Below the pieces are notes generated by a model that saw only the letters and a program-made list of their open reading frames with translations, ran no database searches and had not been told where the DNA came from. Positions 1-60,376 of a stretch of 64,000 bases of DNA are shown here, piece after piece (within the stretch, counting starts at the first letter, position 1; every line of letters starts with the position of its first letter). The stretch lies in contig CATNEN010000003.1 of assembly GCA_950097015.1 (NCBI GenBank), forward strand, positions 3,782,001 through 3,846,000, in the 5' to 3' direction. The position numbers and the translations under genes are program-made. The DNA comes from Macrostomum hystrix. Its lineage: Eukaryota; Animalia; Platyhelminthes.

Positions 1-985
1 ATGAACGTCAGCGGCGACTTCTATGTTCGAGTTTGATGAACTGACTGGCTGAAACAGAATTCAGGTGTTTTTTTCCATCCTAAAACACATTGTAGTTTTT
101 TGTTAGAGGTTTGAACCCCTAAGAGGTTTGAACCCCTAAACGTGAGGTCTGGAGTCTCAAGAGGCTGAGGTTATCGAATGTGCCTATACAGTTGGAGGAA
201 ATGATTTGTGACTTCTGTGTTCCAAACTGAGTAGAAATCTAATGTGCATATTTGTTGATATCAATGTTAAGTTGTGAGATGTTAAAATACTGTAGTAATC
301 TATTATTGACTCATTCACACAGACATTGTACGCAGGCACATAACTCGAGCCTTCCAGAAATATCGCACAAATACAGGAAGACAGGACTATGTCAGCTAAT
401 ATATTGTTGATTATATTTTTTATTGCTCGCCACAGAGCGTGTTTAGTCTAAAATGATGCAGGTATTCGGGGTCTATGCTCACTGCAAATTAATTTTTCTG
501 TATTCTATATCTATCTCCGCCATTACTTTAGCATTCATTCATAAAGTCAAAGTTTTGAAGGCCCTCATAAGTTTATTCTGCCTCTAATTATTTATTGTCG
601 TTATTATTTTGTAATTTCTCTTCACTAAAATAGGAAAATATCTCTTTACCATTGAATGACAAATTAATTTCTTTAGTCAGGATGCAAAAAATTTCACCGA
701 CTCTTTACTGTCCATACGCTCGTATGTGCTTTGGTCACCTGTTTATCAGGATGTACATTTTTCAAGCAGTCTGATTATTTACGGTGTACATTTTATATGT
801 CCACTGATCTGAAACATCTAGCTCGTTATAACAAGTGGCTATCCGCTTGGTAGCTTGCCCATAAGACACTCTGCCAAATGATAAACACTGCTGGTAGCAA
901 GACTTTCCTGACATGAAAATTCTTTTTAGAATTTCGCTAGGACCAAAAACTTCTAACAGTAGGTAACTCGATAGGTCCAGCAAGC

Positions 986-3900
986 ATGCTACCAGATCCT
1001 AGTATCAAACTTTATCGCACCAGCTTCATACTACATGCGATTCTAACATCAATTCTGCCGCTTGCTGTCACAGCGAACCCCAGCTTCCGAGGCAGGGTAA
1101 TCACCAACGGTTGTCCCGTATCCGTGCTGGACTTCGGGCCCAACCTTGAAGGCACACAGGGCCAGCGAGTGTGGTCTGTTGAACCCCTGATGTGTGTCAC
1201 AGCCAATCTAAGCGAGCTGAAGCCTAGCTTCGATCCGGTGACGCGTAGGACGTACCTGAGTGTGCCGGTACTGCTGGCGGACAAAGGCGAGATGTTGATC
1301 AACGCTGCGCGCCAGCTCGGTCTTCTGGATGCTAGGCAGCTGACGTATGCCGGCATCGCCGATATAACAGTCCTGGGCGACGCCTTTGGGCTGGAAACTG
1401 ATCTCATTGTTGCGCTGGACTTTGTGTGGACACCGCCGCAATCTCTTGGTTTCCTGTGGCTGGGCTGTCGAACTGCGAATCGCTGCGATGAATTGTGAGG
1501 CTGCTTGGAAGAAACAGATCTGATGATGTTTTACTTTTTAAAAAATTGTTTTTTTAAGAGGGTCGTGGTCTTGTGGTTTGAGCATTGATGTACGAGCATC
1601 AAGCTGTGAGGTGTAATTTCTATCTCTTTAACCCTCAACCAAAGATAGATTTACAGATAGATAAAACAGAGAGATTGATAACACCTAGCCCAGTTCTGCT
1701 GCAAGCTCCAACCAATGGCTGTGTACAGCTGTTCAAACCACCGAGTTTGAGTTCCAAGCTTCCTGACCCAAAGTCCTGACCCAAAGTTGAAATAATTTTT
1801 TTTAATTCAGGCTTGTAGCCCACCAGGCCGAGGCAATTGAGAGCACCCGATTGTCGGCCTCTCTCTTGGGACTCACCGGAAACGTCAGCTCGCCTTTCAC
1901 CTATCGTCTGACTCTAAAAAACCAAGCCTACTCTGCTGTGGACAGTACAGGCAGTCACGGCATGATTCGACCGCCAATTTGTCGCCAACTGCGACCTATT
2001 AACTTGGTCGATTCGGAAAATTACACCTTCCAGCTGCATCGGAGGCTGGACAGAAAGGGTCACTACCTGCTGGAGCCATTGCTCTGCTATCGGGCCTCGA
2101 GTTTGCCGAGAATTCTAGTCGATAGGATGCGTGGCAAGTACTATTTGCAATTGGACCTTCTCCTGACGGACGCTGTCGTGTTGAACGAGGCGCGCAGATC
2201 TCTCGAACAGATGAGACCGATCTCAGTTGAGTTCATGCGCCTGTGGCTCGCTCAAGCTGTTGTCGATGAAGAATTCGGTCGCCGATTCCAAGTCCGACCG
2301 TTGCTTATTTCGACAGACGGAACGTCGGCTAAAGTGCACGTGTACTGTAATAACTGGACGGATTGCTCGACGCTCAGGTGGGTACTGCTTTGTTTGACAG
2401 AGAGTCGATTATCAGGGGTCGGAAAACTTTTAGACTACAGGCCGAAATTGCATGACGAACCAAAACTAAACATTGTACCTAACTAAAACGCGAGAGATAA
2501 GACGCTGGATGGACAATACATGGGAGAGATGAGACACGGGAAAGATGAGACAGGAGTGATGATACAGGGGGTGATGAGACAGGGAGAGATGAGACAGGGG
2601 GAGATTTGACAGGGAGCGATGAGACGTGAAAGATGAGCTAGAAAAGAGCAGGTGTTGAAACCACGTTGGGTTGGAGTTTTGCAGGCTGTACCGGGTCTAC
2701 AGGCATGAGTTTGCCCACCATTTGGGAAATCTTATCGCTTTGGTCGTGCACTTTTTCATCCTAACTATATCCTGTTCAGGTGTGCCATCAGAATGGATCC
2801 AATCTACCTGTGGCGCCATATCAAATGGACAGTTCAGCTCACAGTGGAGGACAAGTGCCTTCACACGCCATCGAGCCCAAGGCACTCCTGGCAAGTTCGC
2901 AGGAACACAATTCCGCTTCTATCTGGATGGCTTGGCCTCATTAAATGCGCCGGTGCGCCCTGTAAATACGTCCAAGTTAGAGACGGAAAAGAGTTTGTTG
3001 TGCTCATGCAGCGACTCAATGGCAGCGTCAGCTTTCAACGAAACTGGGACGACTATGAGAAAGGCTTCGGAGACGAAACAGACTTCTGGCTTGGTGATTG
3101 GATAAAAATAATAATTGCAGTTGGGCTGCGGGCAATGGCACATCATTTGGTGACAACTGGACCCGCTGCCAGCGAGGAGGCAATTCAGACCATTTCGCTG
3201 ACTCCTCAGCACACACGCACTCAGGTGCGTACATCTGCCCTGACTTTCTCATCGTCAGGCAGTGTACACTCTCACTGTGCCTTGGAGGTTGGCGCTCAGG
3301 GGAATTAATTGCACGACAAGTCCCCAAAATTTAATGTGGCCTCACCGCGGAATCGAGCTCAGGAACCTTGTTGTGAGAGGCAGACGCGTTAGCCGATCTG
3401 CCAACCATACTGGTAAGCAGGATACAGAGCGTACATGTAATCGACGTTTCTCAAGGCTTTTTTTGACGTCGATCTCGAATAGTACACACACTCGTGGAAC
3501 TTGGAGTAAGAACTGCAGTTATTAAGTATAGGAAATGCCTTTTCTGTGGCATATACATGTATGTGAGCAGTCATCAGTGCAGTTTGCAGTATGAGACTGT
3601 TTTACTTATTTACGGTAAATCGGTCTTCTTTAGCAAGACAACAAACTATTTGATGCTTCACCCAGTAGTTAAATGAGTGCCAGCATTAGCTGGGGTAATT
3701 GAGGGTGGGTGTGACGTCCCCCCAGTCCATGGACTGAACAGCGGTACGCAGCTTTCAGATGCGCCGCGCAATAGCTGCGGCTGTCGGCTGCACATCTGGC
3801 CCGATTGGGAATCTACAGGAGTCTTTGTTCTGGTGCAATACTTTCACTTGGAAATACTTCTAACTCTTGAATTACAATACAAAAATTCATTCTTGTAGTT

Positions 3901-4381
3901 TGGATGGCGTCAAGAAATCAGAAAACAAAACTTTAATAACTTTTTAGGCCTAGCTACGGCGCACAAGCTGAGTTTGGAAGGAGTCAATCTTCGAATGGAA
4001 CTCAAATTGTGGAACGGCAGCGAGTTAAATGGAGAGTTTACAAACTTTCGCGTTGAAAACGCCAGCTTTGAATATCGCATGACTTACTCGGAGATGCTAA
4101 CAAACAGTTCAAATATTGGATTTGACCCAATGTTCCAGCACAATGGAATGAAGTTTTCGACTATGGATAGAGACAATGATGCCAACGAGAACTCGTGCTC
4201 AAATAGTTGGAGTCAAGGTGGCTGGTGGTTCAACAGCTGCTACGACATGTACCCAACTGGGCTGTTTCCTAACAGCGACTCCGCAAACTATTCCCATATG
4301 ATTCTGGGAGATTCTCAGCGGCTGCTCCTGCGAGGAGTGCGTCTGCTGATGCAGGTGAACATGTGCGACCTATCGGACTAA
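986..4381 (+). CDS. Secreted fibrinogen-related protein (FREP): signal peptide + two tandem unknown domains + C-terminal fibrinogen domain, ~607 aa
   Basis: Exons 986-1494, 1811-2377, 2780-3093 and 3948-4381 join through GT-AG introns with matching phases (2,2,1). Total 1824 nt. FReD motifs: QRLNGSVSFQRNWDDYEKGFG, FWLG|L, HNGMKFSTMDRDND, GGWWFNSC. Hydrophobic N-terminus. Confidence 0.85.
2413..2722 (-). mobile_element. Degenerate hAT-like MITE with internal 16-bp minisatellite (FREP intron 2)
   Basis: Ends CAGGGGTCGGAAAACT and GAGTTTGCCCACC match the termini of the 14091-14587 element. GGGAGAGATGAGACAC-like units inside. Confidence 0.6.
3107..3406 (-). mobile_element. tRNA-derived SINE, family 1
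   Basis: Minus-strand head with A-box-like TGGCAGATCGG and B-box-like CTCGATTCC, and a (TAT)n tail. Body shared with copies at 8762, 29505, 32720, 50030, 50965 and 63185. Confidence 0.75.
3625..3812 (+). mobile_element. SINE family 2 (CORE-like), 5'-truncated
   Basis: Matches 35146-35415 and 60905-61140 (CAGCATTAGCTGGGGTAATT, CCCCAGTCCATGGACTGAAC, AATAGCTGCGGCTGT). Confidence 0.65.
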
Positions 4382-4504
4382 ACTATTATTGATCAATCAA
4401 TTTACTGTGCGCATTGACTTGCAGCTTAATTGTGCAATAGAAATCTAAACATGGACTCCAGATTTAACTGATTTTTTATATGAACACTGTCGAGTGGAAA
4501 ATTT

Positions 4505-5652
4505 GAGAGTGCAGATTCTGTGGGTAGGGTTCGGAGGGTAGAGTGCAGATTCTGTGGGTAGGGTTCGGAGGGTAGAGTGCAGATTCTGTGGGTAGGGTTC
4601 GGAGGGTAGAGTGCAGATTCTGTGGGTAGGATTCGGAGGGTAGAGTGCAGATTCTGTGGGTAGGGTTCGGAGGGTAGAGTGCAGATTCTGTGGGTAGGGT
4701 TCGGAGGGTAGAGTGCAGATTCTGTGGGTAGGATTCGGAGGGTAGAGTGCAGATTCTGTGGGTAGGGTTCGGAGGGTAGAGTGCAGATTCTGTGGGTAGG
4801 GTTCGGAGGGTAGAGTACAGATTCTGTGAGTAGGGTTCGGAGGGTAGAGTGCAGATTCTGTGAGTAGGGTTTGGAGGGTAGAGTACAGATTCTGTGAGTA
4901 GGGTTTGGAGGGTAGAGTACAGATTCTGTGAGTAGGGTTTGGAGGGTAGAGTGCAGATTCTGTGAGTAGGGTTTGGAGTGTAGAGTGCAGATTCTGTGAG
5001 TAGGGTTTGGAGGGTAAAGTGCAGATTCTGTGAGTAGGGTTTGGAGTGTAGAGTGCAGATTCTGTGAGTAGGGTTCGGAGGGTAGAGTACAGATTCTGTG
5101 AGTAGGGTTTGGAGGGTAGAGTGCAGATTCTGTGAGTAGGGTTCGGAGGGTAGAGTACAGATTCTGTGAGTAGGGTTTGGAGGGTAGAGTGCAGATTCTG
5201 TGAGTAGGGTTCGGAGGGTAGAGTACAGATTCTGTGAGTAGGGTTTGGAGTGTAGAGTGCAGATTCTGTGAGTAGGGTTCGGAGGGTAGAGTACAGATTC
5301 TGTGAGTAGGGTTTGGAGGGTAGAGTGCAGATTCTGTGAGTAGGGTTCGGAGGGTAGAGTGCAGATTCTGTGGGTAGGGTTCGGAGGGTAGAGTGCAGAT
5401 TCTGTGAGTAGGGTTCGGAGGGTAGAGTGCAGATTCTGTGGGTAGGGTTCGGAGGGTAGAGTGCAGATTCTGTGGGTAGGGTTCGGAGGGTAGAGTACAG
5501 ATTCTGTGAGTAGGGTTCGGAGGGTAGAGTGCAGATTCTGTGGGTAGGGTTCGGAGGGTAGAGTGCAGATTCTGTGAGTAGGGTTCGGAGGGTAGAGTGC
5601 AGATTCTGTGGGTAGGGTTCGGAGGGTAGAGTGCAGATTCTGTGGGTAGGGT
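4505..5652. repeat. 34-bp minisatellite (GAGTGCAGATTCTGTGGGTAGGGTTCGGAGGGTA)n
   Basis: Direct tandem array. Explains ORF 4426-5733. Confidence 0.97.
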
Positions 5653-6402
5653 TTCGATAGTGGTCTCTCTTAATTGCAATGTTTGTACAATAGTCAAATC
5701 TATTAATCTATTAAAATATGTAAACGTAAGCACGAAATAATCATTCTATCGATAAAGTTTTAAGATCTATACTTTCTAATAACTGCTTTGAAAGCGTCCC
5801 ATTAAGAATTCAGTTTGGACAAAATATAATTTGTCTTCATTGGCGCCGTATACGGACTACTATATAATTAGACACTTATAAGACGATTGTTTTTTACGTT
5901 GGCTCTCTTGCGACGATTCTGCTGAGACGATCCACTAGAGGGGCCACTTGACAATTTGACAAGTTGTCTTTTCCATGTGATGGCCATACATCAAGGACTG
6001 ATTTATCAAGCAGTCATTGGGATACAAATCATATTTCCCATTTGTTTAGTCTCTATGGCAATAAATTTCCAGCTGTTTCCGCTGTCAGCGCTGCTCAGAC
6101 AGATCCTATCGGTTAGCACTCCTTCTGCCAAGTGGCGGAGTCTTAGAAAAAAGAACTTTCTGGCTTTGAAACATGCGCCAATCTATCTAGACCAATATTG
6201 ACCAGCGGCACACTACAACAACAGCAACCTAACTGGCTAGCAGCTTGTGGTCGGGAATGGTTAGAGCAAACAATGGGCTGGACAAACTCACGCTTGGTCT
6301 TGCTTTTCACTGTTTCCGCTTTCCGGGGAAATTGAACCGACATGGCCAAAACACGGTTTGTTAAATAGGGTGATGTCAACCATTGATTGGTGGGGTGGCA
6401 GT

Positions 6403-8547
6403 TGTTGTGCAGTTGATTAATGCACGTACATAGTTCGTACATGGGTACATGTTCTCAGCTGATATCGATCCAATAACTGAGAATATATAGTCAAACAACT
6501 GAGAGCCAACTTTGCGTGAGAGTTTCGGCTACTAACTTGGCTGACTAGCTATTATTCATTTACAACATTGGCATCGCAAGCTCAAGCGAACACCCACCCC
6601 AATAAGCCGGGTGAAAAGATTGCGGACTTCGTGGCGGCTCTGTATGTTTTGGCTGGCTCATGTGAGTTCCGTGACATGATGGAAGAAATGATCCGCGACC
6701 AGATCGTGGAGAAGGTCAGCGACAGGCGAATTCGAGAGCGCTTGCTGATCGAGGACGGCCTGACGCTGCAGAAAGCAGTGACGCTGAGCCAGCAATGGGA
6801 GACCAGCATCGCTAAGCCAGCGCGATAGAGACGGAAGGCGCAGCCGCGGCCGGAGCACAGCTGGAAGAAGAGGTGAAGAGAGTCCGACTGCAACCCGACA
6901 GGAAGAACACAGGACAAGGGCGACCAGATCGAGAGTCATGCTCCAAGTGCGGAGGCGGGCACAACAGACGAGCCCGGTGTCCAGCTGAAGGCAAGAGTTG
7001 TCATGTCTGCGGGAAGGCGAACCATTTCGGCCGGATGTGCAGGTTGCAGGGCGCCAAGGTCGCCGAGGTCATGGACGAGAGCGGCCAAGCCGTGTACATG
7101 GTGCGCGGCGCCGCCAGTCCCGACATCCGCTGCCGGCTGAGGTGCATGGCATCTGGCTGAATCTGCTTGTAGACTCGGGAGCCAAGGTGTCCATCCTGTC
7201 AGAGAGGACCTTCAGGAAGCTCGAAAAACCGGGCGCCACTCCAGCCGTCGACCAAGAAACTCATCGCGTACAACGGCAAGGCAATCGATGTCGTCGGCGA
7301 GGCGGTGCTGTCCGTCAGCTATCGCGGCCAGCTGGTGCCATTTTTCTGCTTTATCGTGGTACGGCAAGGCTCTGACATCATGGGAACGGATCTGATGCAG
7401 CACCTCAGCTTCCAAGTGGTGGACAAGGACGGCGACCTCGTGCGCACAGTCAAAAAAACGGCAGAGCTACCGGTCTGGCTGTCCGAGCGCTTTAAGCCAC
7501 TGACGCAGGGACTCGGGCGGATCCGAGGATTCGAGCACCGGCCCAGGCTGAACCCCGCCATGCCCCCGGTGGCGCAGTCGCTACGCCGCATCCCACTTAG
7601 CATCAAGGACAAAGTCCAGGCGGAGATTGAACAGCTGCTGGAGGATGACATCATCGAGGAGATCCAGGCTTCAGGGTGGATTTCGAACCTGGTGATCGTC
7701 CCGAAGCCTGATGGCAAAATCAGGGTCTGCAATGACCTCAGGTGCCCAAACAAAGCTATAGTTCCGGATAAGCAGCCGCTGCCGACATTCGAGGAGCTGA
7801 CAACGGAGTTCAAGGGCTCGACCGTGTTCACTAAGCTGGATTTAAATTCTTCGTATCTGCAGCTGGAGCTAGCAGAAGATAGGCGGGACCTAACGGCCTT
7901 CATTGGGGAGAAAGGGCTGTACCGGTATGGCCTAAACAGCGCCCGGGCGGCCTTCCAGAAAGTTCTCAGCAAGATTCTCCATGGCTGTTCCGGGACGCTG
8001 CACTACATCGACGACATAGTGATGCACGCTGCCAACGAGGCGGAGCACCTGCGGCGGCTCACGACAATGCTGGACAAGATGCTCGCAGATGGCGTCACGC
8101 TCAACGCCACAAAGTGCCAGTGGGCTGCAGAGACAGTGCAGTTCCTGGGCTACATCGTCTCCGCGTTTATTAGTGACGGTTATTCGTGGCGGAAGTGTCA
8201 TCCGGACGAACATTGCGTATTGGAGATCTGATTAGTAGTTGGATCAGCTGTTTTGATTTAATTCTCTTTGAAGTACCTGATGCGAAAAAGATCATTTTAC
8301 TCCTTCGATGCTTTGCAATGCACTTTTATTTCCTGCTCAAGATTTCCATAATTCATTTTCGTTGTTCTATCCTTTGAAAGGGAAGGTGAATGTTGTGCAG
8401 TTGATTAATTCACGTACATAGTTCGTACATAGGTACATGTTCTCTGATATCGATTGGCGCAGAATTACAGTCCAATAACTGAGAGCCAACATTGCGTGAG
8501 AGTTTCGGCTACTAACTTGGCTGACTAGCTGCTATTCATTTACAACA
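6403..8547 (+). mobile_element. Internally deleted Ty3/Gypsy LTR retrotransposon
   Basis: LTRs at 6403-6567 and 8391-8547 (TG...CA). 5-bp TSD GCAGT at 6398-6402 and 8548-8552. PBS-like TGGCATC after the 5' LTR, PPT GAAAGGGAAGGTGAA before the 3' LTR. Confidence 0.95.
6590..8165 (+). pseudogene. Disrupted gag-pol: partial gag, zinc knuckles, aspartic protease, truncated RT
   Basis: CSKCGGGH..C and CHVCGKANH..C knuckles, LVDSGA protease motif, RT motifs KLDL and YIDD. Stops and frameshifts present. The PF of the usual PFGL motif is missing. No RNase H or integrase core. Confidence 0.9.
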
Positions 8548-42500: not shown

Positions 42501-45500
42501 GTTTTAGTCCTTTTACCACCGTGTTTTAGTCCTTTTATTACCGTGTTTTAGTCCTTTTACCAACGGGTTTTAGTCCTTTTACCACCGTGTTTTAGTCCTT
42601 TTACAACCGTGTTTTAGTCCTTTTACCACCATGTTTTAGTCCTTTTACCACCGTTTTTTAGTCCTTTTACCACCGTGTTTTAGCCCTTTAACACCGTGTT
42701 TTGGTCCTATCTATCCATTCTTCTATTTTTAATCAATTTTGTCATAATTTTCGAAATAACTATCCAAAGCAATGCTAAGGTACACGAGCAGCTCGAGTCG
42801 CTGAACTCACTCATGGCATCGCGCTCCCTCTGTCTGGCCAGCATCTCTCGTGTCTCCGGCAGCACCCAGTCCACGGATCGGTCTGCATTCAGCGTTAGCA
42901 GCGGCTGCGGCTGCGGCCGAGGGGCGCCCATAGCAGTCTGTCTAGACGATCTCGGCGTTGTCTTCTTGACACGATGCGGCGTCGACTGAGGTCGATCCAA
43001 GTAGCGAGGCGTTGAACGGGCGGTTCCGCCACCTCCGCCGCCCCCGCCCCCACCTACTGCTCCGTCGGCTGCATTAGTCTCGCGTTTCCATGCCAACCGA
43101 TGGCATTCATCGCGTAGAGCCGCCACGCGCTCCAAAAAGCTTTTGCCTCGCTCGTACTCCTCGCGTAGCAGCCGAATGTCTTCGCTCTAAGAAAATGTTA
43201 TCCGAATATGCAAAAAGTTAATGTTGTATAGGTTTCCTGTTGGACCTGGAAGATTGGAGAGTCGAAGGGCTGGGTGTTGGCGGAGTGGGGCTTGGGGTCT
43301 GTACGTGTGAGGAGTCGAAGGGGTGGGTGTAGGCGGAGTGGGGCTTGGGGTCTGGACGTGTGAGGAGTCGAAGGGGTGGGTGTTGGCGGAGTGGGGCTTG
43401 GGGTCTGTACGTGTGAGGAGTCGAAGGGCTGGGTGTTGGCGGAGTGGGGCTTGGGGTCTGGACGTGTGAGGAGTCGAAGGGGTGGGTGTAGGCGGAGTGG
43501 GGCTTGGGGTCTGTACGTGTGAGGAGTCGAAGGGGTGGGTGTAGGCGGAGTGGGGCTTGGGGTCTGGACGTGTGAGGAGTCGAAGGGGTGGGTGTTGGTG
43601 GAGTGGCGCTTGTGGACCTTCGGGATCCATGGCGAAATTAAAGGGTTCTAAGGATGAGTAACATTTTCTTAAAATTAAAAATGAACCAGTTGATTGTGTG
43701 CTCTCGGAATGTCTAATTTATGAGGTCTGTGCTTAGCTAAGCGCATGGATGTACATACCGAGTGATAATCAAATAAGCGTTTTGAATACTAATCTAATAA
43801 AATAAAACAATCAAAATTAGATCATTTATTTCAAAACGTAAATTGCGGTAAAGCATTAACTAACTATTTTTTATAACGTTTTGGTCTATTTTAAAAATCG
43901 AATACCAAAGCAGAACATAAACAGCTTTTCCTTTTAAGTATATAATTCACTAGCTGATATAATACATGCACGATTCCAACGAACCAACAAACCAATGGGT
44001 CGTTGTCTATAAATAGTTTCTTAACATAACATTTTCTACTGCCATAGACAACAAGCATTTGTGGACAGCTGTACCCAGTGCTCTCGAGGTAACCAAGCTA
44101 GTTAAATCTACGAGCAATCTTGTGACAATTTTCTGTTCAATTTCTCAACGATTTAAAAGCTCCATCAACCGCGCCTCAAAGCAATGATCAACCCGGAAAA
44201 CTTCGGTCCATTCGGACCAGGCATGAAGCAATTCAGCAGGCCGAAGGTGATCAAGAAGGATAGCACGCAGGACAAGGCCGCCAACGAGGCGCCGACCATC
44301 CCATTCAGCGTGCCGCACTTCGCCATGGACGTTACTCAACGCCGAGACGCCGGTGTGATGAAGATCGTCCAACAAATGGGCCGAGGGTACGAAGACGATG
44401 TGCCCGGACACGAGGACCGCGTAACGGTGCACTACGTAGCCGTGCTGCTCAACGGAGACCGCGACGGCGAGAAGGTCGAGTCCACTAGGGATCGAGGCAA
44501 GCCGTTGGAGTTTGTGCTGAGCAAGGACAAGAATGTGGTGCCCGGGCTGCACCAGGGAGTGAAGACCATGCGAATAGGCGAGATCGCCAACTTCTTTCTA
44601 AGGTCAGTGGTCAGTGAGCTTTTCATTGATAGCGTGTCAGCGTGTTAAGATGCGCTGCCTGAGTACGAGCCATGAATGGTCCGCTTTAAACTCGCGCAAT
44701 CGACCCTGAGTTCGAATCCGCGGCGAGGCCACATTCAGTTGGCCGAAATTCTCCGAAAGAATGTTTGGGGCTTGACGATGAAGAAGTTAGTTAAAGTACG
44801 CGTCAAGTACAAATATTGTGTGTGTGTCCTTACGGGTCAGTGGACGTTGATAAATCAAAATCAAAAGTACAGTCGATTCCATTCTGTGATTTAATAATAC
44901 TTGCGCTCTGCAAATCGTTGATTCCCGCCATGCAGAACCGACTACGCCTACAGTAAGCGCGGCTGTAAGAGCCTGGGCGTGCCACCAAAGCAGCACATGA
45001 TGTACGAAGTGGAACTGCTGGCGTACAAAGGCGAAGACATCTCGCCAGAGGAGGACGGCAGCGTGCTGAAGAGCATCATGCGCAAGGGTTCCGGCTACCT
45101 ATTTCTTCCCGTCGGCTCGCAACTGCGTGTCTCGGTGAAGGGTCGCCATCGAGGCGAATTATTCGACAGTCGAATTCTCAGCTTCGAGCTGGGCGTCGGG
45201 GATGAGCAGGGCATCCCGGAGGGCGTCGAACAGGCCTGCCAGCGAATGATTCCCGGTGAGAAGGCCCGGGTCATCATCCAGCCGTCCTACTCATACGGCA
45301 TTGATTTTGACAAGTTTGGCGTACCGAAAACCGACGTTGTCGAATACGAAGTCGAACTGCTGAGCTATCAGAAACCACCAGAGCATTTTGAGGTGAGGAC
45401 CGCCGTAAAAGCGTTTGAATTATGTTTTCAAATACTGACTTTAACTCGTAATATTTGGGGAGGTATCGTTTTATTGTTCAGGTCTCAGCGTTCGGCAAAC

Positions 45501-48500
45501 TAGAGCAGGCTCGCATAGCCAAGGACAAGGGCGCCCTGTACTTTGCTAAACGACGCTACAAGCAGGCATTGAATCACTACGAATGCGTTCTCAACTACGT
45601 TGAGCACGATCCGGATTTTTTTGACGTTGACAAAACTGAGCACGCCGAATTTCACAAGGAGAGATGCGACGTACTTTTAGCCGGTCGACTCAACTGCGCC
45701 GCCTGCTATTTGAAGCTGAGAAAGTTTAAAAGCGCCATTAAACAATGCGACCTGGTGCTGCAGAAGCTAGATCCGAAGAATATCAAAGCGCTGTACAGGC
45801 GAGGGCTGGCAAAGTTTAGTCTGAATCAGGTCTACGAAGCCAGGGACGACTTCAAAGCAGTTTTGGAGCTAGAGCCTAACAATGGCTGCGCTGGCAGAGA
45901 GCTGGCAAACTGTCTCGAGGCCATCCAGCAGGCCTACAAGCGCGAGCGTGCCCTCTACGAGACCATCTTTCGTCGCGGCGGTCTTGAAGCAGCTGGCTAC
46001 GGCGGAGAAGGAGTCGTTGCTGGCGCCAAGGACGAGTCAACGAGCGGCGCGGAGGCTCCCAAGTCGCAGGCAGGTGATCTCTGCGAGAATGATGCTCAAC
46101 CGGAGGAGAATTCGAGAAGCAATCAACAGCTGGTTGATTCCGCGCACGCGGTGTCAATGGACGCTGCTGTACCTACTGAGAGTGACTGAAGCACATCATC
46201 CCTGCCCTATAAAACTGTACTAGTCAATAGATTTGAATTTCAAGTATAGATAGTATTAGGTCGCTATGGCAACAGTATGGGATTAAAAAAAATTTTTTTC
46301 TGTTAAATATTATTTGAACTTGAATTTGAATGGCAATTATATGCACTCTAGTCGATACTGAATTAAAGCAAGAATAAATTATTGTTATTTCATTTTTTAG
46401 TTCTCGGCTATTGACAGTGACAAAGTGACAGTGTAACTTTAATCCAAAGAAAAATTACAATCACAACATGCTTTTAAATGCGAGGAATAAGCATGACCAA
46501 AACTGATTGACATGTTAAAATGATACTCACAACTCCTTCAATTCTCAGTTGGTCCTCCTGAAATCAATATCTAGCAATCTTAGAATCTGTGACGCCATTC
46601 TTCACAGCTCTTACCCACTTAAATCCGATCTCACTTATCTGAATCCCATCTCCCTTATCTGAATCCCATCTCCCTTATCTGAATCCCATTTTCCTTATCT
46701 GAATCCCATCTCTCTTATCTGAATCCCATCTCCCTTATCTGAATCCCATCTCTCTTATCTGAATCCCATCTCCCTTATCTGAATCCCATCTCCCTTATCT
46801 GAATCCCATCTCCCTTATCTGAATCCCATCTCCCTTATCTGAATCCCATCTCCCTTATCTGAATCCCATCTCTCTTATCCGAAACCTATCTCATCTATAT
46901 GAATCCCACCTTGTCAATCTTAATCTTATTTTACGAACATGAATTCCCTCTCGCGATATTGTCTTACTAATCCCAATCATGTCCTGATCATACTACTTGC
47001 ACGAAAGTAGTGGCGAATCTGGAAAATACCAAGTCTCACAAGCCAGGCCAAGTCAGGGCTGCTCACCTCCCAAGACTCCGGCCCGCCATCGTTGGCCTGA
47101 TCCGAGAATATGTGAAACCGTGCCCCAGTGTCTCTGGCCAATTGAAACAGAAATTGGTTGGCCTCTTTATCGCGACAGTTGAATGAAATTGTGTGAATCG
47201 GCAGGCGATTGTGCAACTGTGCCTGGGCTAGCACCGTTTTGAAGGGCTGGTCCGGCCGACCGTCTGTGAGCAAATAGACCGCGTGAGTCTGCCGATCTGA
47301 CAGGGCGAACTTTAGTGCCGCCAAGGTGTTCGTGGTGCCGAAGCAGCTCAGGGCCTGAGGAGAATTGGGATCGTTTTGCAATAGGTATGACAGGTTTTTA
47401 ATAAATAGTATCCCCCTCTAGGCAATAATATTTCTTTCTAAGAAAAGTACATCTTTCTAAAAAATAGGATCCTTTCTAAGAAATAATATCCTTTTTTAAG
47501 AAATAATATCCTTTCTAAGAAATTGTTTCCATTCTAAGAAATAGTATCCTTTCTAAGAAAATGTATCCTTTCTAAGAAATAGTACCATTTCTAAGAAAAA
47601 GTATCATTTCTAAGAAAAAGTATCACTTTCTAAGAAATAGTGTCTCTTGCATCGAAACGGTGATTCTTTCTACGAAATAGGAACAGTTAGAAGATGTAGT
47701 GTTCGCTTTAAAAATATTAGACCGTAAGGGAAAGCGCTTGTTTACCAGAAATGTTGTGTGTTTCTAAGAAAACTCATTTGCAAATTAACAAAATAGTATA
47801 TGCTAAGATGAAATTGAACTTTTTTATTGGAATTACTTCTAGTTCGAAGCGAATGATATCAGCTTTTTAGAGTGTAAATTCTTCAATGATTTTTTTCTCC
47901 TTAACTGTTTCTTAGAAATTATTTAATAAAGGTCTTGGTTTCTACGAAACATTTCCTTTTTAATGTTTCTTATAAAAATTTTACATTATTGTCAGACATG
48001 GGATCTCAATTGTTGATTAGAAAATCGGTAACGATCCCGCTCACCTTGATCCAGTTCCACGCTGTCTGCAAGCTCTGCTCAGTCACCTCAACTAGACGAT
48101 CCTTCCACGGATAAGCCTTAGTGTTGAAGGCCACGAAGTTCACGCGAAGCTTGTGCCGCAGCTGTTCCTGAATGAGGATGTAGAGCTTGTCCTTGACAAA
48201 CCCGATGCTTGGTTCCATGCTGGCGCTGGTGTCAATCAGGAAGTAAACCTGGAGTTGATTTGGCGGATTAGAGGTGTTATTACTCCCTCCTTCTCTCTGC
48301 GTTTGTTTACGCTCGCGCGCCCTCTTATTGCACTTTCTCTCTCCCTCAGTCTGTTATTTAACTTAGCTAACCTTAACTTCTCTTTCCTCTAACTCGTCTC
48401 TGATTGGCTAGCTGTTCGTCTCTCTTTCCTCAACCCCTCCTTTTCAGCTCTACCGTTTGGCCCCGTCCCCGTACTCGTTTTAACCCTCAACACCATTTCT

Positions 48501-57459: not shown

Positions 57460-60376
57460 ATGAACTCAGGTGAGTTTGAAGGCAAGCTATAGTATTTTAT
57501 TACATTACAAGGCTTATTGCTACTTAAAGTCACATAAATCATGGACATTTTTCAGTTCAACCAATCGGAAGACAGCAATAGAAATTAAGGAAACTAATTA
57601 ATTAAAACATTGTTAAGCAACTAATTATTCTGGATTAAAGATCACAAGCTAAAGCAAGGAAGACACGAATACAAAGACTGTAATACTATCTGGCCAATCA
57701 GAATTGCTGGCGACAATCATCTAGCCAATCCGAGTGAGGGCGCTGCCTCCTTCACCGGTCTGGGCATGCCAGATGGCGACAGTGATGACGAAGGCCGACT
57801 GCCTAACGAAGATCCGGCCGCAGATGATGGACTGGTTGATTTTGTTGAAGGAGAAGAGGAGGAGGAGCAGTACTTCACAGACCCGGAGGATATCATTGAT
57901 TTAGCTAGGCTGTCAGACTCAGTGATTCGAGTGTCTCCAACTCCAACTGATCCCAGTTCTGCAGCAGCCTCGGCTCCGACCAAGGCGGAGTTATTGCGCA
58001 GCCTGTCTTATTTGGAGGCTGAATTACAGGCATCGGATGCGGCTATTGCGGCACTGCAGGCGGACCAGGCTAGGCTAGTGTTCTATCAGGCCAAGTATGG
58101 CAGATTTGGCTTGGCCGATTCGTTTAATTCGGCTCTAGGAAGCCGCCAGCAGGCTTCGCCGTCGGCCCAGCCGTCCGCCGCCGAGTCGGCAGCTTCAACG
58201 GCTGATGAAGAGAGTCAATTGGGCCAGTTGGAGAATCTTATTGATACGCAGCGTAGGGCGCATCTGCGTATGACGGAACAGCTGAACGGACTTAGGAAAA
58301 AACTTAAGAAGGTAGGTTTAGACAAGCTTTGACTAGTTTTAAATTTGAATTTAGGATTTGAAATTAGTATTTCAAACTTAGGGATTGGGATTCCAAGATT
58401 ACCAATTGGGATTCAAAGTTTACCGATTGGGATTCCAAGTTTAACTATTGGGATTTCAAGCTTATGAATTGGGATTTCAAGCTTATGAATTGGGATTTCA
58501 AGCTTTTAGATTGGGATTTCAAGCTTATGAATTGGGATTTCAAGCTTATGGATTGGGATTTCAAGCTTTTAGATTGGGATTTCAAGCCTTTGGATTGGGA
58601 TTTCAAGCTTATGGATTGGGATTTCAAGCTTATGAATTGGGATTTCAAGCTTATGGATTGGGATTTCAAGCTTTTAGATTGGGATTTCAAGCTTATGAAT
58701 TGGGATTTCAAGCTTTTAGATTGGGATTTCAAGCTTATGAATTGGGATTTCAAGCTTATGGATTGGGATTTCAAGCTTATGAATTGGGATTTCAAGCTTA
58801 TGGATTGGGATTTCAAGCTTATGGATTGGGATTTCAAGCTTATGAATTGGGATTTCAAGCTTATGGATTGGGATTTCAAGCTTATGAATTGGGATTTCAA
58901 GCTTATGAATTGGGATTTCAAGCTTATGAATTGGGATTTCAAGCTTTTAGATTGGGATTTCAAGCTTATGAATTGGGATTTCAAGCTTATGGATTGGGAT
59001 TTCAAGCTTATGAATTGGGATTTCAAGCTTATGGATTGGGATTTCAAGCTTATGGATTGGGATTTCAAGCTTATGAATTGGGATTTCAAGCTTATGGATT
59101 GGGATTTCAAGCTTATGAATTGGGATTTCAAGCTTATGAATTGGGATTTCAAGCTTATGGATTGGGATTTCAAGCTTATGAATTGGGATTTCAAGCTTAT
59201 GGGTTGGGATTTCAAGCTTATGGATTGGGATTTCAAGCTTTTAGATTGGGATTTCAAGCTTATGGATTGGGATTTCAAGCATATGGGTTGGGATTTCAAG
59301 TTAAACGATATTATTTACATTCCAAGCTTGGGGTTCCAAGCTTAATAGATTAAGATTCAGCATCAGCAATAAAGGTTTCTGATGTTGAATGGGGTGATCT
59401 AAATAAATAGCTTAAGCAGTTACTCATTCATCATCGTTAGTGTGCACATTGTTATGAAAACACTGCTCAGGCCTGTCAAGACCTAATCGAAGAACGTTGC
59501 AAGCACGAGCAGGACTCAGCGGAAGGCGACGATGTTCTAGCCGGTCTGGGCAAGGAACGAGAACGACTGCTCAACGAGGTAAGTGCGATTTTATATGAGC
59601 TGAATAACTGCTTGCTGCAATATTTTGCAATACTGCCTACTTGAAGTAGGATTATTCATGCAAAATCCGGAGTTCTTTTTCTGCTCCAATCTAAACAGCT
59701 GGAATTCGAACGCGTCAACAATCGCCGACACGAGAAGGAGCTGAAGCGTCAACTGCGCGCCCTAGACGATGTCAGAACGGCTAGCGCCAAGCAGCGCGCA
59801 GTGGCCCTGGAACAGATTCGCCAACGAAAGCGAGCCACAGAACAGCTGGTTGAAGTAGCCGAGCGCTGTCGTCAGCTAGAAGCTAGACAGGCTCACCAAA
59901 CAGCCGGCTCTGGCGTCATTGTCAACGTCGCCAAACTGGAAGCCGAAGCCGCCGCCGGTCACCGTCGCGTGGCCGAACTAGGCCGTCTTGCTCAGGCTGA
60001 AGCCGCGGCTGCTGACAAACTAGCAGCCGAAGTTGAATCTCTGCGCCTGAAGCTCACGACGGCAACCTCGTCGTCATTGTCGTCGTCGACAACAGTGGCA
60101 ATTTCTAGTTCGGCGCGCCGAGCCAAACCGGAGCCGCCAGTGCGAAGAACCTCGGCTATGACAACAGCTCCGGTGGCTGCTAGTTCTAGGCTGGCAAGCC
60201 CTGCGGCTAGCGTCACTGTCGCGTCATCGCCAAGGACGTCAACTAGTCGACTTCCAACTGGCGGCGGTGTCAGCGGCAGCTCCGGCGGCGGCAGTCCCAG
60301 TAAGCGAGCAACGCCTGGCGTGTCTGGGACTGGCAACACTCGAGTCCTGACCGCAGGCGGCGCCAATGGCAAGTGA
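57460..60376 (+). CDS. CTTNBP2/CTTNBP2NL-like (CortBP2 coiled-coil) protein, ~460 aa
   Basis: Exons 57460-57469 (tentative), 57725-58311, 59471-59578 and 59699-60376. KAELLRSLSYLEAELQASD..KYGRFGLAD and EERCKHEQDSAEGDDV..KERERL..LEFE match the CortBP2 domain. Confidence 0.82.
58380..59300. repeat. 21-bp minisatellite (ATTGGGATTTCAAGCTTATGR)n
   Basis: Intronic tandem array. Explains ORFs 58445-59353. Confidence 0.97.

Follow-up and report, generated by a model that had tools for sequence, protein, structure and literature searches.

What can stand ahead of the fibrinogen-related domain (FReD) of a secreted invertebrate protein, if it is neither an immunoglobulin nor a collagen region? This question is raised by a gene at positions 986-4381 of a 64,000-nucleotide stretch of the Macrostomum hystrix genome (assembly GCA_950097015.1, contig CATNEN010000003.1, positions 3,782,001 to 3,846,000 of the forward strand), which is the whole of the DNA analysed and is called the window here. 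An initial annotation, made from the sequence alone, had read the gene as a fibrinogen-related protein (FREP) with a duplicated N-terminal module of no recognised family. Among the soluble recognition molecules of invertebrates, FReD and C-type lectin proteins have a major place, and the part ahead of the head sets their valency and reach: collagen in ficolins, immunoglobulin superfamily (IgSF) domains in snail FREPs, and coiled coils in angiopoietins. In this free-living flatworm lineage, another, unnamed domain without a solved look-alike is used, and it is used with two unrelated heads. The reading that we prefer, and to which we give a probability of about 0.62, is that the gene encodes a secreted protein of the order signal peptide-module-module-FReD, in which the modules would form a mobile scaffold presenting lectin-type heads, and that the protein would act as a soluble recognition factor.

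The gene model has four exons on the forward strand. Exon 1 (986-1494) contains the start codon, a putative signal peptide (~986-1075, residues 1-30, with a hydrophobic stretch at residues 12-30) and the core of module 1 up to C-x5-C-D-E; it ends with two bases of a Leu codon, so that intron 1 (1495-1810) is in phase 2. Exon 2 begins with a linker or extension of ~53 aa after module 1 (1811-1970), for which the structure model has low confidence (predicted local distance difference test, pLDDT, 39-62 over residues 1-54), and continues with the core of module 2 (1971-2377; PPIC...EPLLC...C-x5-C-S-T-L), which AlphaFold2 (AF2) modelled with a pLDDT of ~90 over residues 55-188. It ends two bases into the next codon, which gives a phase-2 intron 2 (2378-2779) and makes the whole of exon 2 a symmetric 2-2 exon of 567 nt. 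The first part of exon 3 (2780-2981) encodes the extension after module 2 (CAIRMDPIYLWRH...EDKC) and then a family-specific stretch ahead of the recognisable FReD, and its second part (2982-3093) encodes the start of the FReD, corresponding to PF00147 positions 39-77. Exon 3 ends one base into a Gly codon, so that intron 3 (3094-3947) is in phase 1. The remaining FReD, PF00147 positions 90-191, is encoded by exon 4 (3948-4381); this part contains the D-R-D-N-D loop and, around GGWW, the Cys pair, and the exon closes with the stop codon TAA at 4379-4381. The donors are GT at 1495, 2378 and 3094 and the acceptors AG at 1809-10, 2778-79 and 3946-47, each acceptor with a pyrimidine-rich tract ahead of it. 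With intron phases 2, 2 and 1, the product has 169+1+188+1+104+1+143 = 607 aa. Its single hydrophobic segment, at residues 12-30, lies at the N-terminus and ends in AVTA, with no other found in the product, and there are nine N-x-S/T sequons; these features of the predicted product fit a secreted glycoprotein.

That the four fragments belong together came from comparison with Macrostomum lignano. The genome searches covered the 220-Mb assembly of 42 contigs, in which the window is C3:3782001-3846000, and were run exon by exon or with uninterrupted natural relatives (the M. lignano protein P0022, or the ORF L007:775-1974, ORF standing for open reading frame). All four window exons find their best M. 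lignano match in the Mlig010465 group of 606 aa (P0022, P0040, P0041), and the identity of exons 1-4 to P0022 in BLASTP is 51, 53, 61 and 63%. The exon 1 alignment covers P0022 residues 31-168, with E169 of exon 1 matching E168 of P0022; the codon split by junction 1 is Leu in the window and I169 in P0022. Exon 2 corresponds to P0022 residues 170-357 and its split codon AGG (Arg) to R358; exon 3 corresponds to residues 359-463 and its split codon GGC (Gly) to G464; and exon 4 begins at L465, so that I463-G464-L465 is continuous across junction 3. Two of the three split codons thus give the residue of the orthologue (R358 and G464). As no residue is lost or gained at any of the three junctions, the comparison strongly supports the splice model, and the proposal that four ORF fragments splice in phase into a protein of ~607 aa was borne out. 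The three M. lignano genes Mlig010465g1-3 (PAA87967.1, PAA92085.1 and PAA92058.1) are near-identical copies and orthologues of the window gene, collinear over the full length with two modules and a FReD. Judged by this alignment, the locus holds an intact Macrostomum-type flatworm gene, conserved relative to Mlig010465.

Are the two modules copies of one another? The plain pairwise comparison of exon 1 with exon 2 is marginal (BLASTP E 0.006, 31% over 48 residues), and the self-similarity becomes significant once the paralogues are added. In phmmer searches, exon 2 of the window matches exon-1-type exons of paralogues with E down to 5e-8. When a 31-sequence alignment of module 1 was compared with a 36-sequence alignment of module 2 by hhalign, the two matched with a probability of 98.9% and E 1.2e-17 over 131 columns. 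The match pairs exon 1 residues 21-169 with exon 2 residues 54-187, spans all three motif pairs pointed out in the initial annotation and stops at the C-x5-C motif. L188 of exon 2 aligns with the codon that intron 1 interrupts, and the position of intron 2 is one codon further on; both are in phase 2, so that the two introns are indeed within one codon of the equivalent position, as had been claimed. In the model of P0022, the secondary-structure elements come in matching order in both modules. We conclude from these profile comparisons that the two ~130-aa cores encoded by exons 1 and 2 are homologous, and that the proposed tandem duplication holds. It is not a recent tandem copy, however. 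In a maximum-likelihood tree of 62 module cores, rooted at its midpoint only, each window module is paired with its counterpart in P0022, module 1 at a support of 100/100 and module 2 at 100/99. All first-position modules, whether of FReD genes or of genes with a C-type lectin domain (CTLD), fall into one clade, and the modules of the other positions into a second (96/80). It follows that the duplication is ancient and position-specific, and older than the separation of the two species and of the paralogue subfamilies. Homology was considered as well for the linkers that follow modules 1 and 2 and for those separating the units of the CTLD genes, and with hhalign E values of 0.65, 0.0016 and 0.027 it is suggestive at most; for this reason we claim the duplication for the ~130-aa core alone.

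The window gene is one member of an expanded family. About 27 further loci in the genome have the four exon types in the order of the window gene, most of them in a cluster on contig C15 (0.94-1.45 Mb), which answers the question of the number of paralogues that the initial annotation had raised; matches to the last exon, which encodes the FReD, number at least 139. Among the paralogues, identity is 30-43% in exons 1 and 2 and 46-50% in exon 4. A word search with the 400-aa two-module ORF L007:775-1974 (minus strand) found only M. lignano proteins, of 520-647 aa and with a C-terminal PF00147. The C15 cluster itself holds ~16 two-module FReD genes, among them pairs with identical scores (e.g. 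1135k/1273k, 1203k/1320k and 1247k/1347k), which are either recent segmental duplications or uncollapsed haplotypes. In three loci of this contig (L007, L008 and L009), the junction between module 1 and module 2 lies inside one open frame of 412-415 aa, so that intron 1 is either lacking or open in these copies. FReD proteins with a single module occur as well (P0025, and L031 in this genome). Some 12 kb past the end of the window, at C3:3857918-3858475 (minus strand), a further FReD gene shows up by matches of exon-3 and exon-4 type, and the genome match lists gave no module matches nearby. A module pair at C24:4633000-4639000 (L028) was considered as a carrier of a third head type and dropped: no head exon was found within 3.4 kb downstream and the module-1 frame is broken, so that it is probably a truncated dead copy.

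The module is not confined to FReD proteins. An array of six modules ahead of a C-type lectin domain (PF00059) was found in P0019 (1462 aa), which starts with a mucin-like stretch rich in Ser, Thr and Pro, in M. lignano P0020, and in M. lignano Mlig001890g2 / Mlig001546g1 (P0034 and P0035, ~1437 aa); these carry the module of the window gene, in six units rather than two and with a CTLD rather than a FReD. M. hystrix has an orthologue of P0035 at C34:6656367-6665282 on the minus strand (L026, L033), collinear with the M. lignano protein. It has one module per exon, two of the modules being split by an extra intron, and its CTLD exon is at L033:9367-9765. All five unit exons of this gene that were examined end in C-x5-C-x2-L plus 2 nt before GT, which is the phase-2 position of window intron 2. 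In every module exon examined, from FReD and CTLD genes alike, a phase-2 intron follows C-x5-C-x2-L or lies one codon earlier. A symmetric 2-2 exon with common phase-2 borders is the signature expected of exon duplication and shuffling. In the module tree, the CTLD gene's first module and the first modules of the FReD genes are sister groups. This placement, in a tree rooted at its midpoint, suggests that both gene types go back to a multi-module ancestor and that its head was exchanged. The initial annotation had proposed a new FREP architecture in which an exon-encoded domain takes the place of the Ig or collagen region. A doubled module does occupy that place, and the idea that the module is specific to FReD proteins fell with its six-fold occurrence ahead of a CTLD. 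The architecture was already present in the public M. lignano protein sets without annotation, and is therefore undescribed rather than unseen.

How far does the module reach beyond M. lignano and M. hystrix? With a profile built from 21 module cores (A1), a search of 1.84 billion representative proteins at E <=1e-3 gave 16 matches, of which all the named ones are from M. lignano. The JGI metagenome fragments P0024, P0028 and P0031 have 36-43% identity to their closest known members, and the Logan-assembly proteins P0019 and P0029 have 49% and 60% identity to the M. lignano CTLD-type protein; by their sequences, these five look like products of further macrostomid-like species. One match, a repetitive protein of the SRR6056297 assembly (P0032/P0054, 1809-1922 aa), was rejected as spurious: each of its stretches matches only 52 profile positions, at a domain E of 0.008 in a tiny database, and it has many spurious Pfam fragments. 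The initial annotation had pointed to a similar motif in uncharacterised Daphnia proteins, and this did not hold up: neither Daphnia nor any other arthropod is among the 16 matches in the 1.84 billion representatives. Within the databases searched, the module is restricted to Macrostomum-like sequences, as far as a profile search reaches, since HMMER may miss very diverged relatives.

The module core of ~130 aa is defined by E-P-L-x-C, D...Y.[LV].[LV]..L.D, L-S-P-x-S-V-x-F and a terminal C-x5-C-x2-L. Both window modules fit this definition and the 35-sequence alignment, except at the second cysteine (C2) of module 2, where there is a Tyr. Pfam searches of the 35 module sequences gave no consistent match and no Ig family among the matches, and those of window exons 1 and 2 gave nothing credible. 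A hit of exon 2 to DUF7646 (E 0.095, 13 bits against a cut-off of 27) lies in the low-confidence linker, is not shared by other members and was rejected as chance. A sequence search of the PDB with the module profile found no relative (best E 0.47). AF2 models were built on 26-35 sequences, and that of window exon 2, from the 35-row alignment, has a confident core at residues 55-188 (block pLDDT 81-97) and poorly defined first 54 residues. The predicted core starts with a three-stranded sheet, followed by the order beta-beta-alpha-beta-alpha-beta-beta-alpha. Foldseek found no fold match for this model in the PDB (best E 0.058, TM-score ~0.2). An exhaustive VIA-align comparison with 48,161 chains gave no Z of 5 or more, the best being 4.8 over 53 residues, in a method by which models without a true match usually still reach Z 7-8. 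The full-length model of P0022 is mediocre (mean pLDDT 62.5) and places a helix and one or two strands after each module; the ESM Atlas gave no usable match for this orthologue. The claim that the module belongs to no named family was thus upheld, and in the searches and predicted models the module is also without a solved fold.

Two accounts of its origin can be set against each other here. As a tentative proposal, the module could be a new fold that arose within the macrostomids and spread by phase-2 exon shuffling as a general, disulfide-clasped carrier of lectin heads. The worms would then have evolved, independently, a family of recognition receptors with one scaffold and exchangeable heads, convergent with that of snails, the VIgL proteins. 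Alternatively, it could be a known alpha/beta sandwich, SEA-like or ferredoxin-like for example, that has diverged so fast that it goes unnamed. The second half of the core has the order beta-beta-alpha-beta-alpha-beta-beta, and the weak VIA-align matches to this half (residues ~87-188, Z 3.4-4.0) are an assortment of mostly two-layer alpha/beta sandwiches, including ribosomal S24e, PilN/PilO and bacterial microcompartment (BMC) shell proteins. The low Z and TM-scores over all chains, the lack of a SEA entry among the listed VIA-align matches, and the lack of any Pfam or PDB sequence signal speak against such a relationship, and we consider it doubtful.

Cysteines that were lost together give a hint of how a unit is held. 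Among 29 units (core plus 62 residues) from eleven proteins, C2 and C3 were lost jointly in seven, with no discordant case, and C4 and C5 in six with one discordant; C1 is mostly concordant with a linker Cys ~55 residues past the core. These joint losses are partly non-independent, as some are common to orthologous units. Each unit probably has three disulfides, C2-C3, C4-C5 and C1-linker Cys, according to this pattern of co-variation. The linker that follows the core is ~50 aa long, and a clasp between C1 and the linker Cys would mean that the structural unit is core plus linker, ~190 aa, with the linker encoded by the next exon. Units 1-3 of the CTLD-type gene have lost the C2-C3 pair. In window module 1 and in its orthologue, C1 and the linker Cys are both missing, and the exon 2 extension of the window gene (1811-1970) has no Cys, unlike that of most paralogues; after module 2, the Cys of the exon 3 extension co-varies with C1. 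The C2 position of module 2 (2022-2024) reads TAC, Tyr71 of exon 2, which is Cys in nearly all other modules, including module 2 of the M. lignano orthologue. This Tyr may be a true substitution, be polymorphic or reflect a base error.

The head is a recognisable FReD. Pfam assigned PF00147 to exon 3 residues 68-104 (E 7e-9, 36.2 bits) and to exon 4 (E 1e-19, 71.3 bits) against a cut-off of 22, and together the two exons cover profile positions 39-77 and 90-191 of 221. In exon 4, FSTMDRDNDANENSC...GGWWFNSC aligns with FSTWDNDNDKFEGNC...GWWMNKC of human fibrinogen gamma, so that the Ca2+ loop (DRDND, compared with DNDND in fibrinogen gamma) and the P-subdomain Cys pair around GGWW are kept. Exon 3 residues 3-55, ahead of the recognisable FReD, match family members only, and the first part of this exon is modelled as a helix followed by a strand in the orthologue. 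From the conserved loop and Cys pair, we infer that the FReD may be a Ca2+-dependent lectin-type binding head.

We propose that the module could be a scaffold made mobile by exon shuffling, on which lectin-type heads are presented, spaced and possibly brought together as multimers, that the FReD would be the Ca2+-dependent head that binds the ligand, and that the protein would be a soluble recognition or agglutinating factor; a role in pattern recognition is suggested by analogy with known proteins of this kind. Several observations weigh against this proposal. The splice junctions, and the expression of the gene, are predicted from comparison with M. lignano models, and the AF2 model of exon 2 is based on 35 sequences only. 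C3 of module 2 (in EPLLC) is kept despite the change of C2 to Tyr, which leaves the presumed partner Cys unpaired. The ends of the FReD are atypical: PF00147 positions 1-38 and 192-221 are unmatched, and the C-terminal part, on reading the sequence, lacks the usual Trp-rich motif, so that a canonical sugar or acetyl pocket should not be assumed. The P0022 model has low confidence at 382-419 and at 538-590, the latter being the P-subdomain region with pLDDT below 50. The modules diverge faster than the FReD from the orthologue (51-53% against 61-63% identity), which fits modules as the variable binding part. Finally, our literature search found no paper describing this Macrostomum family.

The last two observations on the protein lead to another division of labour, in which the N-terminal modules would be the main variable recognition surface and the FReD or CTLD would act as a constant effector part or in multimerisation. 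Among the paralogues, too, conservation is lower in the modules than in the FReD (30-43% against 46-50%), the P-subdomain of the FReD looks degenerate, and variable recognition by the IgSF domains has been proposed for snail FREPs. We consider this rather unlikely, since the FReD retains its Cys pair and the aspartates of its Ca2+ loop, the same module array also carries a different head, the CTLD, heads being the usual binding parts of such chimeras, and the motifs of the module core (EPLxC and LSPxSVxF) are strongly conserved, as would rather be expected of a structural scaffold.

Less probable still is that the family is secreted for a structural or reproductive purpose, as mucus, egg-shell material, seminal fluid or a gland product, and takes no part in immunity or recognition. 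In Macrostomum, secreted proteins that are confined to the genus, expanded in tandem and quick to evolve are typical of such purposes. The restriction of this family to Macrostomum-like sequences, its tandem expansion on C15, the mucin-like start of the CTLD-type P0019 and the lack of immune data on the family in our literature search would all agree with such a role. On the other side, the FReD and CTLD heads are classic lectin folds, and the window gene is a conserved single-copy orthologue and not a copy of fast turnover. It is very improbable that the window copy is decaying or unexpressed despite its open frame, as its conserved Cys changed to Tyr at 2022-2024 and the reverse-transcriptase fragment and 1.1-kb satellite just downstream might suggest, because it has four open exons with canonical splice sites and no indel at the junctions, 51-63% amino-acid identity to the M. 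lignano orthologue over the full length, and an intact Ca2+ loop with the remaining Cys kept.

A 34-bp tandem repeat starts 125 bp past the stop codon of the gene (4506-5653, 33.8 copies, 96% match) and gives a spurious minus-strand ORF of 435 aa at 4426-5733. About 3 kb downstream of the gene, an ORF on the plus strand at 7305-8228 matches reverse transcriptase (PF00078, E 5e-21) and is probably a retroelement fragment. Within the introns, there is a two-copy 13-bp repeat in intron 1 (1761-1787), and a 15-bp minisatellite GGGAGAGATGAGACA in intron 2 (2522-2637, 7.8 copies, 78% match). Further away on the plus strand lie two ordinary, unrelated neighbours, ORF fragments with TPR repeats at 45455-46186 (PF00515, E 1e-13) and with the cortactin-binding-protein-2 N-terminal domain at 57766-58329 (PF09727, E 1e-16). 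Scans for tRNA and Rfam families over positions 1-8000 of the window gave no match.

What is new here is the six-fold module ahead of a CTLD, the common phase-2 border, and the pattern of Cys losses that points to three disulfides. The family offers a clean and datable case of a lineage-specific domain that arose and spread by duplication and shuffling of symmetric (2-2 phase) exons. M. lignano is a laboratory model with RNA interference and transgenesis, so that the role of the family is directly testable. The module merits a Pfam entry of its own and is well suited to structure determination, and should the immune reading prove wrong, a new and well-delimited domain family is still left.

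How does this family compare with known systems? Like ficolins, tachylectin-5 and angiopoietin/fibrinogen-type proteins, the window protein ends in a FReD that has the Cys pair and the aspartates of the Ca2+ loop, and its modules occupy the place taken by IgSF domains in snail FREPs or by collagen in ficolins. Unlike in ficolins, no exon translation of the window gene has a Gly-X-Y run or a collagen match in Pfam, and in contrast to the ficolin/angiopoietin type, two globular ~130-aa modules are found in place of a long coiled coil, none being predicted. The closest analogue is the VIgL family of snails (Biomphalaria FREPs, CREPs and GREP), which combines one type of N-terminal module, present once or twice, with interchangeable lectin-type heads. 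VIgL proteins consist of IgSF modules, a helical linker and a FReD, C-type lectin or galectin head, and recognition by BgFREPs is believed to involve their IgSF and FReD parts alike (PMC12074976). Similarly, the Macrostomum family has a FReD with one or two modules or a CTLD with six, no galectin-headed member having been seen, and both families are expanded, partly tandem and restricted to one lineage (PMC12074976). The modules themselves differ: that of Macrostomum has no Ig match in Pfam, its predicted core is alpha/beta with three helices, and no Ig chain scored above Z 3.6 in the VIA-align comparison of the exon 2 model. The window family could therefore be the flatworm counterpart of FREP, CREP and GREP in design and not by descent, because its module is not an Ig domain.

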